Positions 53,958 through 64,000 of a stretch of 64,000 nucleotides of DNA are shown piece after piece (the stretch's first letter is position 1; every line of letters starts with the position of its first letter). Where the stretch lies: NCBI GenBank assembly GCA_904063045.1, contig CAJFCJ010000008.1:682001-746000 (forward strand), given 5' to 3'. The position numbers and the translations under genes are program-made. The stretch comes from Dimorphilus gyrociliatus. Taxonomy: Eukaryota > Animalia > Annelida. Under the pieces are notes generated by a model. It was not told where the DNA came from, made no database searches, and was given only the letters and a program-made list of their open reading frames with translations.

Positions 53958-55190
53958 ATGGCAGGATTAGCCGAAAAGAAAATTATTTATAATTCTATGT
54001 CAGAAGACGATCCTAATGGAAATAATAGCGGAGAGACAATAGAAGAGGTGAACACACCAAGATGGGGGCCAAATCATGCAGGGGCAAAGGAATTAGCGGC
54101 TGGTTACTCTACAGGTAATGTAATTGTTAGGCCTAAATAGAATTTCGAATTTTTGCTAATATCAACACTTTTAGGAAAGCGTATCCAAGAAATTATGTGT
54201 GTTGCCATAAGCATACCCTTAATGCTTGTGAACATTTACTTTCTATTTGTGAATTTCTCGTTTAATAGATGGTATATCATATTAATAAGTGGAGGTTTGT
54301 AATAATTTATCTAACATAATTATTATGTAACTTGAATTTTGATCTTTTAGTTCTAGGTATCCTGATGGCAGATTTTTTTAGTGGGTTAGTCCACTGGGGA
54401 GCAGATACGTGGGGCAGTGTAGATCTCTTTCTTTTAGGAAAAGTAAGTATATATTTCACTAGGCCTATACAATTGAGATAAACAATTTAGTTTACTAGTA
54501 GGAAGTATTGACAAACGTCGAATGATTTATGTAAAAGTACATATTCAATTAAATTTATCTTTATATTGTCAGAATTAAGCGTAATGTGGCTTATCTCGTC
54601 AATTATCGAACTATATCGTGACATTGCTGTGACTTGCAGCGTTATACATTACATGTTTTTTAACACGTATTTCAATAAACTATCATTGATTGTTTCTTTC
54701 AACTTTTCAGACATTTATTAGACCTTTCCGAGAACATCATATTGATCCTACTGCAATAACAAGACATGATTTTATCGAAGCAAATGGCGATAATTTCGCT
54801 GTCTGTATACCTGCTTTAGTCTATATGGCCTATCAATTTTGTTCTTATGAACAGAAAGATATTGATTTAGTTTACAATAGGAATACTTTTATAATATTTC
54901 TAAGCATTTTTGTCTCAATGACGAATCAAATTCATAAATGGTCACATACATATTTTGGTTTGCCAAATTATATAGTCTGGCTTCAAAATTGCCATATAAT
55001 CCTACCGAGAAAACATCATCGAATTCATCATGTTGCTCCTCATGAAACATACTTTTGTATCACGACTGGTTGGTTAAATTATCCTTTTGAGTATATCGGC
55101 TTTTGGACATTTTTAGAAAATCAGATTGAGAAATTTACAGGTGCCAAACCCAGGTCCGATGATTTGGCATGGGCAAAGAAAACTGATTAG
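53958..55190 (+). CDS. PEDS1: Plasmanylethanolamine desaturase (TMEM189/Kua), 4 exons
   Basis: [70 protein letters not shown]. Confidence 0.96.
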
Positions 55191-55734
55191 ACTATGCTGA
55201 CATGATTTACTTTCTGCTGCTCTGATATCATATTTAATTCTTCTGAAGAAACTTTATCAAAATTCGTTATGTATACCTTTATGTTATATATATAGTATGA
55301 GGCTGGTTTATTGGTAAGCAAATTCTGAACCTTGCATATAAAAGACATTTAATTGTTGTCAAGAAATGTTCAATAGTAGGCAATGAAATATTAGGTTCGA
55401 CTATAGTCTCATTTGATATTGTCCATCAATTTTTAATTATAAATATACCTTTTACTCAATGTTCAAAGGTCCCATGAAAAGATCAGAAAATCTATTTTAT
55501 CACGATTTTCCCACATATATTTACTCTGAAATGTATATAACGTTAAACAAGTATTACGATAGGCTATATCGACATTTTGTACCACATTTTAATGATAAAA
55601 AGAGTTCTCACAGTGTAATGTGCACTTGTTTCATTGAAAAGGAAAGTATATATATTTAATACATGCAGTTATGTTTCTATCAGTGTGCTATTGAATCAAT
55701 ATAGTTTATACACATACGAATTTTGCAATTCTGT

Positions 55735-58649
55735 CTATTTGAATTTGAAATTTGTTCGTATCAGATATTTCATTCTTATTTGTTGAACATCGTATACAAT
55801 ATACTCGTTGTACATTAGAGATGTTTTAGTTGATCCAATTAGCGGATTATCAACACCTTTACCGCAAGGTACAATGACGTCATTTCTGAAATAAAAATAT
55901 ATAGTATATAATTCTTTTTATGTTATCTACTATTCGCTCTTACAGTTTTTTAACAACTTTCGGATCTGGAGCTGTTCTACCAACTCCATGAGTGCTTGAC
56001 ATTCCTTTTGGTAAATTTGATGCATTATAATCGGCCGCGAATTTTTTGCAAGTTTCGCCCAGTGCTACTTCGCAAAGTAATAGTAGTCCTGTTGAATTTA
56101 CCTTATTTGCAAAGCAGTAGTTAGCACTCTTGCTAGACATGTCAGCAAAATAAACGCCTTTTCCGAACTTAAAAAAACAAAACAATTATTACATTTTACA
56201 CTTTTGTAGATGTACAGTATACCATATAGCCAGTAACAGGCGCTTCAGGTGGTGCTATTCGAAGTCCTTTGCTAAGAATTCCAACCCAGTTGGTTAGTCG
56301 AGATCCATGCCATAAAAGCATTCTAAAAGGAATAGTTAGTTTAAATATAAATTGTGTTCATTTAAAGGAATAATTTTAAGTTCATACTTGTTTCCAACAT
56401 CATTATATACTTTATCCTCTCCATCTCTTTCTACTTCGAAAATTTCTTTTATTTCCAAATCATATTGACGATGCGTCTTTGCGTGAGTATTTTGCATATA
56501 CTCATTGATAATCTAACATGGCAAAGGTACTTGTCAGTGAAAATACCTATTAATCTGAATGTTGAATTTACCTTGAACTCATTAGATTCTTGCTTTATTA
56601 GTTTAAGATCACATCGTAATGATTTATAGTGTGAATCGATCGGATTTTCACCTTCATCCACATTCTTTAGAACGTTCATAGCAATTTCAATATCACCTAG
56701 AGTCTTTTTAGGAAACGTTGGGTAATGAATTATCCATCTTCAAAGATTAAAGTAAAATGTATGTATAAATACCTCGAGCAACTGTAGTTTAGTTTTCACT
56801 TCTTGCATAGTACTTATTAGTGGAGGTCTCTTCATTCTACGTTGAAAACATTGTTAATTTTGAAGATGTTTTTCTTACAAAAATGGAATTCGTACCCGAA
56901 ATTATGTGGTATTTTAGTGTAAAAGTTACTACAAGCGTCAACCAGAGATGTTTTTGACTTTCCTTCAATGCACTCAACAACACTCTTTAAAGCAGCAAAA
57001 CCAGCCTTAATTTGATTAGGGGTGAGTTTACCCAATGGAGCTTTTTCAGCATCATATTTTAATTCAACAACAGCTGCTTCCATAGCTTTGACATCGCTAA
57101 TAAGCTTGATAAGGTCTTGTACTGGTTTATCTAGAGATGATTCTCGAATTTCTGTTTTTATTCCTGGTTTTGGATTTGCTACTTCTGGTTTAGCCGTATC
57201 CTGCGAATAATTAAAATATATAGATTATTTAGATTAAATGTTAGGGGAAAGGAATTTAGTGAAGTGTTTGAAAAATTATTTTTCAAAAAGTAATGTATAC
57301 TAACAGTACTGTAGTCTATATGAACAAGATCATATTTTCCTTGTATTTTGACAAATGACTTTCGACTCGACCATTGATTCCTTGTTTTATCATAAAACCT
57401 AAAGAGAATTGTGAAAGAGAAAAGAATATTTAAACATATTGGATAGTTACTTTTTTTCAAAAGTTTTTTTTGCGCCATCCAGGGAAGATCGTGCAAGATT
57501 GGTCTGTCCTTTGACTCCAACTCTTCCCCATCGTGTCCAAACACAATATGAGGAAGCAGATTTTTGTTTTAATAGTTGAATAATGTAAAATTTGTTATTG
57601 TTATGATTCACATTTGTCTGAAACAATAAAGAAGGAATTATATTTATTATATTCGATTTATGGTTAGTTGTGAATTGTCAATTTGAATACCTGGTTGAGC
57701 ATTGCGTCATAAATATCATCACCTTCAACATAGACCTCGTATATCTCAGGATTCGAAATTTCCGGGTCTACTGGTATTTTTCCAACTTCCATTCTATATG
57801 TTTTGGCTAAATTCGACGAAATTGCTATAGAAAATAATACTTATTTTGTTTTTGATTTTACTTGACTTAGTGATAGGTTTCTCATCTGTTTCCTTTGTTT
57901 CTGTTTTTACATCAAGACCATCTTCGTCGAAAGTTTTTGTTACTGTGACATCTGTTCGTCAGGCAGTTTTAAAGATATGACTTAATTTATTTGTTGAGCT
58001 TTATTACCTGACGTTATTTTTTTAAGTTTATCTTCTACAGATTCTCCAACGGCTGTCATACAATCGAAATCAACAGTTGCTAATTCTTCCAATTCACCGT
58101 TTTCAAGATGAAGATCTGTAATATCAACCGTGCTTTCCTTCGTTTTTAATGCTTCCGATATCCGAGTTACATTATATGCCGAGAGCGTCTTTACATTTTC
58201 TATTTGCCAAATTTCGTTATCTAAAGGGAATGATTTATTAGTGAATTTCATGGAGTTGTTTAAAATATCAATAGTCATACCAATAAGGTATCTTAACTGA
58301 ATTTCTTTGCGAGCTTTCTTTGCGATCATATTCTTAAAATTTATATTGAAGCCTGATACTTTCACCTAAAAATAAACCAATTCCTTGATTAATTAGCTAC
58401 AAGCTTGGGATGATTTTTTACAGTTTTTTTTCCATGTTCATAAGCTGCATTGATATCAGCATTTACTTCATCAGGTAACTTATTCCATTTATTATTTAAA
58501 TCAAGCCATTGCCAAGAACATTCTAGTTTTGGCTTTTTCGCTACATCAGCTGAATCGGGTGCAGATTCTAAACGAAGAATGCTATTTTAATTTAGAAATA
58601 TTTGTTAAAGAAATTTAATACTTGAGCTTCTTTTGCTTTTACGTGGCAT
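55735..58649 (-). CDS. PARP2: Full-length PARP2-like enzyme (copy B): WWE-WWE-WGR-regulatory-catalytic, about 12 exons
   Basis: SWQWLD..KW (WWE), YDAMLNQ|[21 protein letters not shown] (WGR), PLGKLT..QI, FYTKIPH, LLWHGSR, GVYFAD, YNEYIVY. The H-Y-E triad is intact. Confidence 0.92.
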
Positions 58650-59778
58650 ATCTATTTTCTTTATGCGTGTTTTGCCTAGGTATCTGTAAAACTGACAGGA
58701 AAATTTCCTTCAGTAAGATTTTATATACCAATCGATGACTAAACTTGGGCAGGTAATAACAAGACAAGGCATATATTGAACAAATATTGGCCGCTACGGA
58801 TATAGTATTACTAACTTCCGCGTGGAGTTGTTCTTATTAAAGAGATATTAAATGAAGAAATTTTTTGTTATAAAAATAACATTAAAATTTAAGAAAAAGC
58901 AAATAATCTAAAGTAAATTAATACTTTAAACGAGTTTTCATATATTAAAAATTTTTTGAGATATTAAAGAGCACTTTCAAGAAAGTTTATCATTTCAAAC
59001 GCTACGCGGTTAAATGTTCCATAAATCGAAGATAGTGATAAATAGGCAAATTACAAGTATTTTTGTACAATTAGAAATTAATACTGGCTTTAATTTTTGG
59101 TTTTATATGTGCTATTTAACTTTTAGTCAAAAAACTTCTGCTTAAAAATGCTCTTAAGAGTAAAGGAAGAGTCTATGGATAAATATCTATTTATTAAAAT
59201 TATTTGTACTCAGAGAATGCCATTTACATATAATGTTAAATGTTAAAGATTCCTTTGTTTTAATAATGAAAGAGAGAAAATAGTGTTTAAATGGACAAGA
59301 AGCTTTTTAGACAATAAGTTTATAAAAACTCAACTTTGTAACCTTATTACATTTAGGAATGATTTCTGCAAATTTATCAGTCATTTTGTGCCAACAGAAG
59401 CAAAACAAAATGATTATTTTGCTGTCATAAATGCATTTTCTCCATCAAATTCGTCTTTATAATATGATTCATTACTATAGTTTTAGTTATTTTTAACTTT
59501 CTAAAATATTCTTTAACCACGATTATTCTGAGTTTATATCTTAAATGTAAAATAATCATTCTCTTTTCAAAATGAAGGATGCTCAAAATTTATTTATATA
59601 GCGAAGTATCGCTCACTATTTTATTAGAAATTGAAGATATTGTCTGCAAGGGGAACAATGTCTGTTGATGAGTATATGAAATTGCAGTTTTTATTTTTAA
59701 TAATTTATCTACTTTTAATATTGAAATGATAGATTAAATACAGCTTGCACAAAAGGACAAAAGGTTATAGACAAAACA

Positions 59779-59990
59779 TCAAATGTCATAATTTGAACTA
59801 AAAGCCATTCGTATCAGATATTTCTTTTTGTTTGACATACATGTATATAATGTATTCAATGTACTTCTAAGATGCTATAGGCTTACCAATACCTTTTACC
59901 ACCAGGTACGACGATATCATTTCTGGAATAATAAAAAAATATACAGTTTAATAATTTTTTCAGATCTGGAACTATTCAACTAATTCCGTA
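59779..59990 (-). pseudogene. Decayed remnant of the last 1.2 catalytic-domain exons of PARP copy A
   Basis: Aligns by eye to copy B: GGAATTAGTTGAATAGTTCCAGATCTG vs GGAGTTGGTAGAACAGCTCCAGATCCG (AGA->TGA), NDIVVPGGK vs NDVIVPCGK followed by a +1 A frameshift, then KYIEYIIY...KYLIR vs MYNEYIVY...KYLIR. Confidence 0.85.
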
Positions 59991-60084
59991 AGTAGATGTC
60001 TCGTTTAGTAAATTTAGATTAAGGTGATAATGGAAAATAACTTTTTGTGAAATGATTAAAATGTTTAAAAGTTGTTGGCGATAT

Positions 60085-61546
60085 CTAAAAATATTTCAAA
60101 AAGTAATGTGTACGAACAGTACTGTAGTCTATATGAATAAGATCATATTTTCCTTTTACGCTTTCAAATGATTTTCGATCTGACCAATGATTCTTTGTTT
60201 TGTCATAAAACCTAAAGAAAACTGTAATATAGACAAGAATATTCAAATATATTAGATAGTTACTTTTTTTCAAAAGCTTTCTTTGCTTCGTCAGTGCTTT
60301 GATATGAAATCAAACTGCTCTGTCCTTTGACTCCAACTCTTCCCCATCGTGTCCAAAGGCAATATGAGGCGGCACTTTTTTGTATTAATAGTTGTATAAC
60401 GTAAAACTTGTTGTTGTTTTTACCAATATTGGTCTGACATAAGAAAGAAAGAATTATATTCACTTTATTACATTCGATTTATGGTTAGTTGTGAATTATC
60501 AATTTGAATACCTGGTTGAGCATTGCATCATAAATATCATCACCTTCAACATATACCTTGTATAATTCAGGACATGTAATATGTGAGTCTACCGGTATCT
60601 TGTCAGACTGATTGGGTACAGCTTTACCTTTAAAGATATTTTACGGGTAAACTTTGTGTGAATTAGGGTAAAACTCTATTTTTACTTGGTTTTGTTTTTA
60701 CAGTGTCTGCTTTGTCATTAAAATTTTTTGTTCTTGTCGAATCTGTGCTGAATATAATTTATTTCATTGAAAATTGGTCAGCGTATTATTAAATGACTAC
60801 CGGACTCGATTCTTTTAATATCATTGTCAATAATTCCGCCCATCGCATACATATCATCAAACGTTATCTCAACAAGGTCATCATCTTCGTCATTTTCAAC
60901 GTAGACACCTGTGAGTTGAATTGATGGTTGCTTGGCCTTGAACGCTGCTTCAATCAGTTCAACATTTTCTGCGTTCATTGGATGATGATTTTCAACTTTC
61001 CACGTTACATTGTCTAAGACCCGCAAGTTAAATTGAATTAAAAATTCTATGAAACTGATCAATTAAAATGAATTCCTTTTGAAAAAGTTGGAAAGAAAAA
61101 GCTTTTTCTTATAATTTCTTAGAAAATATATTAATATATATTCCATTTAAGATATATTTGCTTACTTAGAAAATACCGCAAATAATATTGTCTTTCTTCT
61201 TTTCTTGCAATCATATCTCTGAAGGTTATTATATATTCTTGTACAGTTGCCTGCAAAATGATAACGTCCTTATGCTCACAGAGAAAAAGAAATATTATGC
61301 AATATCTTACAGATGGACTACCAGCTCTAAAGGATTGATTTAATTGTTGATTAATATGGTCGGTAAATTTATACCAATTACCATCTTCATCTAACCACTC
61401 CCATGATGCATTGACCTTTTCTTTTTTAGCTGGTGTGCTTTTCCTTGAAGCTGTTATGTAATAAACGTGAAAGTACAATAAATTGAAAAAGTTGTTAAGT
61501 GCATAAGGAATTTACTGTTAGCTGCTCTTTTCCTTCCACCCGGCAT
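60085..61546 (-). CDS. Truncated PARP paralog (copy A): NLS-like start, WWE-WWE-WGR only, about 300 aa, 8 exons
   Basis: Exons 61546-61516, 61450-61311, 61250-61166, 61013-~60802, 60742-60686, ~60628-60512, ~60434-60263 and ~60211-60085 splice in frame at positions homologous to copy B. It ends after IDYST(VRTHYFLKYF*), and no regulatory-domain exons follow. Confidence 0.75.
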
Positions 61547-61809
61547 ACTTTCACTGATTTGACAGAAATGTAACAAGAAAGCAAATTGCTGTGTAAGAGA
61601 AAAAAATGCCGAGATCAGCCGACTTCTGAAACGTTAAACAGGCGCCATTCTTGTAGACTAGTTACGGGGTATTTCTATTATATGAACGGCGCGTGTACAT
61701 AAACAGACTACGATCACATCTTGATTTACTATATAGATTGGAATTTTTTTTACACAATTGTATTTTTTACATTGGACTTAAATACATTTATAAAACTTTA
61801 TAACAAAAA

Positions 61810-63277
61810 TTAGCTTAGAATCTCTTGAGCTTTATTGTGTACCAAACCCTCCATTGATGAGACTTGATCACACCATGAGTTTAATCGGTCAGCCATCGTT
61901 CTTATCTGATCTTTATCCAATACTCTAGGTTGAACCCAGCTCATATGAACTGTTTGATCGACTTGATCGATTGAGCCCTTGACAAGTTTCAATGATAAAG
62001 CCCTCATAACTAGGTGTTCTACTTCGCCTTTGTTAAGATCTGTTTCTTTGGCGATATCAGAAAAATTTAAAACTCTTTCTGTAGCTGGCCTTTTAAAAGT
62101 CATTTCCATCAGACAAAGCAAAGAGATTTTCTGTCTCATATATTTTTCATTTACGTTTAAGTCAGGCTGCTTACTCCAATGAACTTTTAGATCCTGATAT
62201 TGGCTTATATTGCCGCTATTAAAAGCAAACAGAAGTTGTACGAGCCAGGATTTATCAGATTTTCTTAAAGCTTCTAAGATGTCGTGTTGTAAAAGTTCAC
62301 CAAAATTATAAATGCCACTTCCCAAAATAGCTGCTAGTCCAATATTGAAAGCCCTTTCGATTTGATCTTGGTCTGTAATAATTTATACAAATAAATAAAT
62401 AAAGAGTAAATTGTGTGTAACAAAAAGCCTCACTGGATAAAGTTTTCACATCTATGCAACCGAGATATCTCAAAGCATCTCGATAGTAGTCAGCATGATT
62501 AGCTTGTCGTTTATGAAAATTACTACATAGCTCGTAGTAAGGTGCATGGACTGAGGTTACACCATCTAGCTCTTCAAGTAAGTTTCCAGCCTCGTCAATA
62601 ACATGCTAAAAAATAATTTGAAATAAGGTGAAAAAGAATTCAAATTCTCCTTTTATAAATACTTTAACTTTATCCGTATCATTCAATAAAATATAATAAT
62701 TTCCTTCAGTTATAAGACATAAAACAACTGCCTCGTTATCATTTTTTACTTTTTCCTTTCGAATCTTTTCAATAAATGCAAGAGCTTGTGTATTATCTGC
62801 AATTGATCAATTTATAATATAGACTATTAAATGTAAAAAAAAAACGTACCTTTCATTTGCCTTGCCACAGGGATGAGAATCTCTACCAAAGCAAGAGGAT
62901 TCATTCGGTGTTCAAAGTCTGATATGAAGTTTTGGTACAGCTAATGTTGATCAACAGGGTTATTAGAAAGAGTAATCAAAAATTTTCAAAGCGTAATACC
63001 TGCATTATTGCATCACCCTGCTGCAGTTGGGCGTTTTTAACAAATTTTTGTAGTCTTATTGTTAATTGATGCCATAATCTAAAGAGTGATAAAAGGAATG
63101 AAAAGCTGAGTCACAGCCGGCAAAACAATTTAGCCTAAAAATCTGCAATTATATTAAGTTATACTTAAAAACTTACTTCCTATTGTACAAATCCTCAAGG
63201 GCTGCCCATTCCTGGGATACTTCGCTAGAAGATTTCCTCTGTTGTTCGAAAAGATAAGCTGAAACGTCTCTCACCAT
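61810..63277 (-). CDS. PSMD13: 26S proteasome non-ATPase subunit 13 (Rpn9), 6 exons
   Basis: LEDLYNRK|[79 protein letters not shown]. Confidence 0.96.
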
Positions 63278-64000
63278 TTTTATTTAACGGAAGTGAATAT
63301 TTGGTAAAATATAAATTTTCTGTTAAAACAAACTGGTACTAATCCAGAGCCCTCTAGAGGTTCAATTAATATTTGAAGAAACTTTGTTGTAAATCCTTAA
63401 ATTTAATATAATTTTATTATTAATTAGAAAAGGTTAAAAGAAATAACCTTTTTCGGATTTAATGAGCGGAAAAATAATCCATATTCGACAGCTTCAACTG
63501 AATAAAAGAATAAAGTCTGACGAAATTGATATATATCAATATTTGCAAATTGGAATTAATAAAAGATTAGAAATGTAAAATAAGTTTTGATTAGTATTCT
63601 TGATAAACGAATTCTTGAATGTCAATTTAAGCAGAGGTTTCAATTAATTAAATCTTTGCTATTTCCCTTAGAAAATTGACGGTAGTTGAAAGGAAGTGGA
63701 ATATATTGAAACTTAAATATAGGAAATAAGCGAAAGAGTATGGATAACGAAACCGCAATAATACTGGATGAATAGATCTTGGTTTAAGAGCATACAATGT
63801 CTTTGTTCTTAATACCATACTTATCAGAGATTCTCTTTTTTCGCTGTTTCTTAGCGAACTTTACGACCTTGAAAAACAGTCTGTTTATTACACTGATAGA
63901 GGATAAAATCCGTAATAGAGCAAAATCGGATATTAGTAAATCGCCTGAAATACTTATGTCTTATATTTATAATAAATAAAATACTTATACTATATATGTG

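Follow-up and report, generated by a model that had tools for sequence, protein, structure and literature searches.

A transcribed PARP2-type paralog that has lost its catalytic half in Dimorphilus gyrociliatus is predicted to encode a binding-only WWE/WGR protein

Can a PARP2-type gene live on after the loss of its regulatory and catalytic parts, or is it then only a pseudogene whose open half has not yet decayed? The question is raised by a tandem pair of PARP2-type genes, copy A and copy B, in a 64-kb stretch of Dimorphilus gyrociliatus DNA (the window, to which all coordinates refer). Exon models of both genes were assembled with the help of three-frame translations and splice signals. They lie on the minus strand, in the order PSMD13/Rpn9 gene (about 63290-61810), copy A, copy B. 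An earlier note on this DNA had described two tandem PARP2-like copies, and with the reconstruction of both genes this description holds. The window is AT-rich (about 32% G+C), and its introns of about 55-75 bases fit the median intron of 66 bp reported for this genome (PMC7854359). RNA evidence came from the contigs of one public run (X1, 2017), which contained 52% of the words sampled from the A locus; these contigs were compared with 55720-61700. Domain searches and folding were run on single exons.

Copy B was found to be a full-length gene:

55735-58649, minus strand: copy B, 15 exons and 679 aa, with WWE, WWE-like, WGR, regulatory and catalytic domains and an H-Y-E triad

The WWE domain in exon 2 of copy B scored 18.7 bits in Pfam (E 0.0024), which is under the 21.1-bit cut-off. 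The WGR domain in exon 7 was matched at E 1.9e-16, and PARP_reg at E 2.9e-26 in exon 9, from where it extends into exon 11. Exons 12-15 covered positions 7-198 of the 199-position Pfam PARP profile, the triad motifs WHGS, GVYFAD and YNEY were present in the translation, and the catalytic domain is predicted from the sequence to be complete. Against PDB, the catalytic exon matched PARP2 best (E 1.2e-20; PARP1, E 1.7e-17), so that the label PARP2-like given in the earlier note can be kept. The two marks of a clade 1 PARP2-type gene, a regulatory-helical domain after the WGR domain and a complete catalytic domain, are both found in copy B. N-terminal WWE domain(s) have been reported in PARP2 homologues of many non-mammalian animals (Perina et al., PMC4245714). 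Apart from the sub-threshold score of its WWE domain, copy B has the WWE-WGR-regulatory-catalytic architecture of these metazoan proteins, and can therefore be regarded as an ordinary PARP2-type gene. An alternative acceptor for exon 6 of copy B at 57824, which would leave a 37-base intron, was ruled out because the length of the RNA contig, 856, fits only a start at 57806. With this start the intron has 55 bases and the exon 116 bases, matching copy A.

Some minor observations were made around copy B. A PEDS1/TMEM189-like desaturase gene on the plus strand converges on it (54000-55190 and 55400-55735), and a 3146-base RNA contig extends about 1850 bases beyond the 3' end of copy B. The 3' ends of the two genes probably overlap or abut. 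Two other RNA contigs depart from copy B at 58206 (exon 4) and 58388 (intron 2) into 235-255 bases of unrelated sequence, and these may be alternative starts or chimeric contigs.

The structure of copy A was reconstructed as follows:

59589-61546, minus strand: copy A transcription unit, from the ATG to the last RNA-covered base, 9 exons, predicted WWE/WWE-like/WGR protein of 303 aa
61546-61516, 61450-61311, 61250-61166, 61013-60801, 60742-60686, 60627-60512, 60433-60264 and 60211-60118, minus strand: copy A exons 1-8, in frame, all GT..AG
61311-61450, minus strand: copy A exon 2, basic N-terminal tail and first half of WWE domain 1 (second half in exon 3, 61250-61166)
60801-61013, minus strand: copy A exon 4, second, divergent WWE-like domain
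60118-60627, minus strand: copy A exons 6-8 with introns 6-7, linker and WGR domain

The eight in-frame exons with valid splice sites that had been proposed for copy A were thus all recovered. Their phases are those of copy B, and their sizes are equal to those of copy B in exons 3, 4, 6 and 8. It had also been claimed that these exons encode two WWE domains and a WGR domain, and this stands for the first WWE and for the WGR. The exon 2 WWE (PF02825) scored 24.5 bits (E 3.7e-5), over the 21.1 cut-off though it is half a domain, and its best match in PDB, a weak one, was the WWE domain of DTX1. The WGR domain was strongly matched in Pfam (E 3.4e-18), and its best PDB matches were the WGR domains of PARP3 and PARP2. 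The second WWE was weak. Exon 4 of copy A remained below the Pfam WWE threshold (12.4 bits, E 0.21), and a Pfam WWE match was not found for exon 4 of copy B. When a profile of three exon 4 sequences was compared with PDB, the WWE domain of PARP14 ranked first, again weakly (E 0.5). The AlphaFold model of copy A exon 4, made from a 3-sequence alignment, was of low confidence (pLDDT 58). Foldseek with this low-confidence model gave WWE domains as top matches. By VIA-align, the same model (pLDDT 58) was matched to 12 WWE entries (HUWE1, TRIP12, RNF146, DTX1) at Z 4.9-6.1, with an rmsd of 2.4-3.0 over 55-56 of 70 residues, and the next unrelated entry had Z 3.2. With moderate confidence, exon 4 can be described as a divergent WWE-like domain.

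By Pfam, PARP_reg and PARP catalytic domains were absent in copy A and found only in copy B, in agreement with the earlier claim that copy A is missing its regulatory and most of its catalytic domain. The loss was mapped to a deletion of roughly 1.2 kb, which took exons 9-13 and most of exon 14. The alignment of copy A to copy B extends past exon 8 to near the end of old intron 8, and then jumps at about 60012/60011 into exon 14. The corresponding breakpoints in copy B are at about 57226 (last bases of intron 8) and about 56012 (exon 14), and a TC(T/A)AAAT microhomology is present at both. This took out the regulatory domain entirely, together with about two thirds of the catalytic profile. 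Downstream of the junction, two remnants are left:

60011-59945, minus strand: exon 14 remnant, about the last 67 bases of the exon, with one stop (AGA to TGA) and one frameshift
59779-59922, minus strand: exon 15 remnant, 72% identical to copy B exon 15, with 2-3 frameshifts and a TAG stop in the homologous frame

The exon 15 remnant tracks copy B only across three reading frames. Together the remnants carry at least 2 stops in the homologous frame and 3-4 frameshifts, that is, at least 5 disruptions. The 3' piece is decayed, as had been reported, but the earlier count of one stop and one frameshift was too low. The remnant is about 70% identical to copy B (28-31% divergence) and keeps the Glu codon of the triad. 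In copy A, only the exon 14/15 remnant has the character of a pseudogene. Copy A is thus PARP2-derived and is not a PARP enzyme, its regulatory and catalytic parts being deleted or broken by stops and frameshifts. Compared with PARP2 of non-mammalian metazoans, it is the same gene type by origin, with matching exon phases, but differs in being without the regulatory and transferase domains and in having a second WWE-like domain under the Pfam threshold.

Among the joints listed, the contigs of run X1 skip exactly introns 1-6 of copy A and introns 6-14 of copy B, the skipped segments being bounded by CT..AC; there are eight further joints. These skips at predicted introns indicate that run X1 consists of transcript data. 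The splice junctions expected for copy A were in this way matched exactly at introns 1-6 by spliced contigs of one run, and the coordinates of one contig (record 4) match exons 1-4 to the base. The A and B contigs each end 30 bases into a 39-base run common to both genes, which is expected for a 31-mer graph.

Downstream of exon 8 the contig depth changed sharply, from 216.8 in the bin 60120-60319 to 7.24 in the bin 59920-60119, and a 328-base contig (record 3) covers 59589-59916. Under a splice joining 60118 to 59922 (60118|59922), 5 transcript bases correspond to a depth of 289.6 and 148 transcript bases to a depth of 293.0, and the two values agree. From this depth, it is likely that exon 8 splices directly to the acceptor of the old last exon, across the following intron:

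59923-60117, minus strand: new last intron of copy A, 195 bases, consisting of old intron 8, the junction, the exon 14 remnant and shortened intron 14

The signals of this intron are ACT|GTTCGT at the donor and TTCCAG|AAATGA at the acceptor. The splice shifts the frame, so that the predicted protein ends in ...DYST-K-stop after 303 aa. Its last two codons, AAA TGA, occupy 59922-59917, after which the 3' UTR begins, and AATAAA signals are found on the minus strand at 59625 and 59594. With its stop placed in the last exon, the copy A mRNA should not be a target of nonsense-mediated decay. The contig depth of copy A was about 290, against 293.9 for the 5' contig of copy B, which is a crude measure suited to rough comparison only. 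The remnant at 59779-59922, described in the earlier note as part of a decayed 3' half, is not dead DNA; with an RNA contig covering 59589-59916, it is very probably the terminal exon and 3' UTR of copy A. A read-through model of 312 aa, in which exon 8 would continue to a stop at 60085, was ruled out, as the RNA contigs leave 59926-60117 almost uncovered.

It was considered whether the truncation might be an assembly collapse, or a deletion allele of one haplotype with a full-length copy A also present. Tandem paralogs with common 31-mers are prone to mis-assembly, and the data comprise one assembly and one RNA contig set, in which contigs drop rare variants. However, the junction lies in unique sequence with microhomology, and the flanking remnant is decayed, which is not a product of collapse. 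Moreover, no loose contig end at 60118 was reported among the run X1 contigs, the depth agrees across the new intron, and no further PARP pieces, including a second set of exons 9-14, were found elsewhere in the 64-kb window. We consider this explanation highly improbable.

Two minor observations concern the upstream part of copy A. Intron 3 (61014-61165) has 152 bases, compared with 60 in copy B and 115 in a relative described below. One RNA contig fits this intron up to 61100 and then continues into 255 bases of other sequence, with about 26 extra depth units there, and could represent a minor alternative 5' exon, a repeat or a chimera. The distance from the PSMD13 stop to the ATG of copy A is only about 266 bases (61547-61812), and one 2746-base RNA contig spans both genes, which could be due to overlapping UTRs or read-through.

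In the earlier note, copy B was taken to be the full-length parent of its twin, copy A. The comparison of the two genes does not agree with this. In exons 1-5, outside the block described next, the copies show 49-64% nucleotide and 35% amino-acid identity, and dS is at least 1.95 and saturated. Introns 1-5 are 45-67% identical, which is the level of alignment noise. Judged by this saturated divergence of their 5' halves, copies A and B are old paralogs, and their similarity is limited to one block around the WGR domain:

60090-60598, minus strand: homogenised block (copy B 57777 to about 57278), from mid exon 6 to the start of old intron 8

Within the block, identity is 77-85% in the exons, 92% in intron 6 and 83% in intron 7, and dS is 0.40; a 39-base run at 60357-60319 is identical in both copies. 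Since the introns are similar, which protein constraint cannot explain, the block was assigned to non-allelic gene conversion, probably in short tracts. Alike introns within the tract and saturated divergence outside it are what this process leaves. As in other cases of non-allelic conversion between tandem paralogs, the copies are alike in a sharp block that includes introns, with flanks without detectable nucleotide similarity; the difference is that here one partner has lost half its gene. Set against the decay of the remnant (about 28-31% divergence), the tract is the more recent, and conversion therefore went on after the truncation.

The recurrent conversion tracts might also mean that copy A matters mainly as DNA or RNA. 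It would then be a conversion partner that buffers the WGR exons of copy B or, with its transcript end about 870-900 bases upstream of the copy B start, a unit that insulates or tunes the copy B promoter. This explanation leaves the open unconverted WWE exons, the whole-codon indels and an omega well below 1 (see below) unexplained, and we regard it as improbable.

The age of the duplication was judged from a relative. When copy A exon 4 was searched against 1.8 billion representative proteins, one true relative was obtained, an ORF of 65 aa (P0001); a second match was discarded as a spurious bacterial repeat protein. The 65 aa ORF sits on contigs from four public samples, on which a PSMD13 gene is followed by an A-type gene (A') that is intact across exons 1-5 and into exon 6. 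The first WWE domain of A' scored 21.2 bits in Pfam. There were 46 residues common to A and A' but not B, while the other two pairings gave 25 and 16. Copy A and A' are thus orthologs, which indicates that the duplication is older than the split from the relative and that copy B is not the recent parent of copy A. All four sample contigs end at one and the same position, 24 bases inside A' exon 6 (4246-4269 of contig L001; also L002 and L003). This contig end falls just ahead of the segment shared by A and B, and hints at a duplicated and homogenised WGR block in the relative as well. In word-index protein searches, the WGR exon retrieved only SAP-WGR PARP2s of other organisms, and copy B exons 3-4 and copy A exon 4 gave no matches. 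No relatives were found in a metagenome scan, and the copy A exon 4 ORF was not on record in an exact look-up.

The comparison of copy A with A' gave a dN of 0.40 with saturated pS, and an omega of 0.09-0.34 by bootstrap. For the time after the deletion, the remnant was used as a neutral yardstick. No disruptive change was present in 555 unconverted coding bases of copy A, against at least 5 in 211 remnant bases, so that the contrast in stops and frameshifts between 5' exons and remnant drawn in the earlier note is confirmed. The probability that all five disruptions fall in the remnant is 0.0016, a value from a post hoc test with few events at a locus chosen for its asymmetry. In the A/B protein alignment every gap is a whole number of codons, and all seven old introns of copy A keep their GT..AG signals. 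A relative-rate test of the N-terminal half counted 25 A-specific changes and 16 for A' (P 0.21), showing no acceleration. In the WGR block, 8 A-derived and 11 B-derived changes were counted, and copy A was not faster.

These results support the proposal that the 5' half of copy A is under selection, in that omega is about 0.1-0.3 and the disruptions are 0/555 against at least 5/211, but much of the conservation predates the truncation. Catalysis seems to have been lost late in the life of the gene, and much of the A/A' conservation would therefore date from the full-length past of copy A. The intactness of the WGR block may owe something to conversion from copy B, and transcription from an intact promoter is not proof of function. 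From the statistics above, we infer that purifying selection on copy A continued after the catalytic loss.

The main competing explanation is that copy A is a young, still-transcribed pseudogene of a once full-length paralog, whose open 5' half has not yet decayed. The remnant, about 70% identical to copy B and with the triad Glu codon, points to a loss that is recent against the saturated A/A' and A/B divergence. Cross-species constraint can stem from the full-length era, the WGR block can be repaired by conversion from copy B, and with the stop in the last exon no decay pathway clears the mRNA. Nevertheless, the 555 unconverted bases gained no disruption while 211 remnant bases gained at least 5 (P 0.0016), 7 of 7 introns keep GT..AG, A-specific changes are not in excess, and the contig depth of copy A equals that of copy B. 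A young pseudogene is a serious candidate, though on this evidence a rather unlikely one. Exons 1-8 show none of the marks of a pseudogene: the frame is open, the introns are GT..AG, spliced contigs exist and omega is low. On balance, we favour the explanation that copy A derives from a PARP2-type gene and lives on in a non-catalytic form, with a protein that is predicted only to bind, and we consider it fairly probable.

As a live gene, copy A could have arisen in the following way. An old tandem duplication would have produced copies A and B before the split from the relative that bears A'. Much later, a microhomology-mediated deletion of roughly 1.2 kb would have removed the regulatory and most of the ADP-ribosyl-transferase domain from copy A. 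The exon 8 donor would then have used the surviving acceptor of the old last exon, with a change of frame and a stop after one codon. The product would be a stable mRNA, its 3' UTR supplied by the old last exon, that encodes 303 aa with a basic, NLS-like tail, WWE, WWE-like and WGR domains, and short conversion tracts would hold the WGR segments of A and B alike.

PARP2 senses 5'-phosphorylated breaks through its WGR domain and is recruited to PAR by its N-terminal region, which binds this polymer (PMC6089979). By these roles, the predicted copy A protein would sit at DNA breaks or on PAR, where it could neither synthesise PAR nor detach through automodification. It might compete with copy B and other PARPs, cap breaks for them or scaffold them. 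Some WWE domains, that of PARP14 among them, do not bind PAR (PMC10450202). The role of copy A as a decoy, competitor or scaffold for copy B is purely conjectural. A more specific version, in which copy A is a nuclear, reader-only partner of PARP2 (WWE-WWE-WGR) that would home to PAR and 5'-phosphorylated breaks, be incapable of automodification and act in trans as a brake, break cap or scaffold while conversion keeps the WGR domains matched, is put forward tentatively and is itself doubtful.

Several known systems resemble this arrangement in part. The short isoform of ZAP (PARP13) is a non-catalytic product of the PARP family, and caspase cleavage leaves a DNA-binding fragment of PARP1. Non-catalytic PARP relatives are known, but to our knowledge none of them is a WGR-bearing sensor of DNA breaks. 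The plant protein RCD1 is a PARP-family member without ADP-ribosyl-transferase activity (PMC2964712). Short ZAP and RCD1/SRO are thus, like the predicted copy A protein, PARP-family binders without transferase activity, and ZAP and RCD1 have WWE domains. They differ from copy A in belonging to clades 3 and 2 and in having no WGR domain. Furthermore, short ZAP arises by alternative processing of one gene, whereas copy A is a separate truncated paralog, and RCD1 retains a degenerate PARP fold, whereas copy A is without a transferase domain.

The over-expressed WWE domain of RNF146 is an experimental PAR-reader module (PMC10793466). Both this domain and the caspase fragment of PARP1 are non-catalytic modules that occupy a ligand and alter PAR signalling in trans, and by analogy they could serve as a working model for copy A. 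They are artificial or proteolytic, whereas copy A would be a genome-encoded and constitutively expressed predicted binder. If the reader-only reading is true, copy A would be the first known case of a clade 1 PARP that became a stand-alone sensor through loss of its catalytic half. Copies A and B would then be a ready-made pair of binder and enzyme for asking what WGR/WWE binding does without PAR synthesis, a use comparable to studies of PARP trapping or of dominant-negative fragments. The locus also shows how, through a deletion, a last exon that was once coding can come to serve as 3' UTR, so that mRNA decay is avoided, and how gene conversion can be restricted to one domain of a paralog pair. 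Up to now the truncated copy A is known from a single small invertebrate genome, which limits the reach of the case.

Finally, the PSMD13 gene that precedes the A-type gene in both animals was compared. At the boundary of PSMD13 intron 1 and exon 2 (63061-63120, minus strand), the last 41 intron bases and the first 18 exon bases are identical to contig L001, and the other PSMD13 introns fail to align between the window and L001. Rfam gave no match in 55000-64000, nor for the conserved PSMD13 block. The conserved block contains TGACTCAGC at 63113-63105, the core of an ARE/MARE-type bZIP site, a type known for driving proteasome genes.
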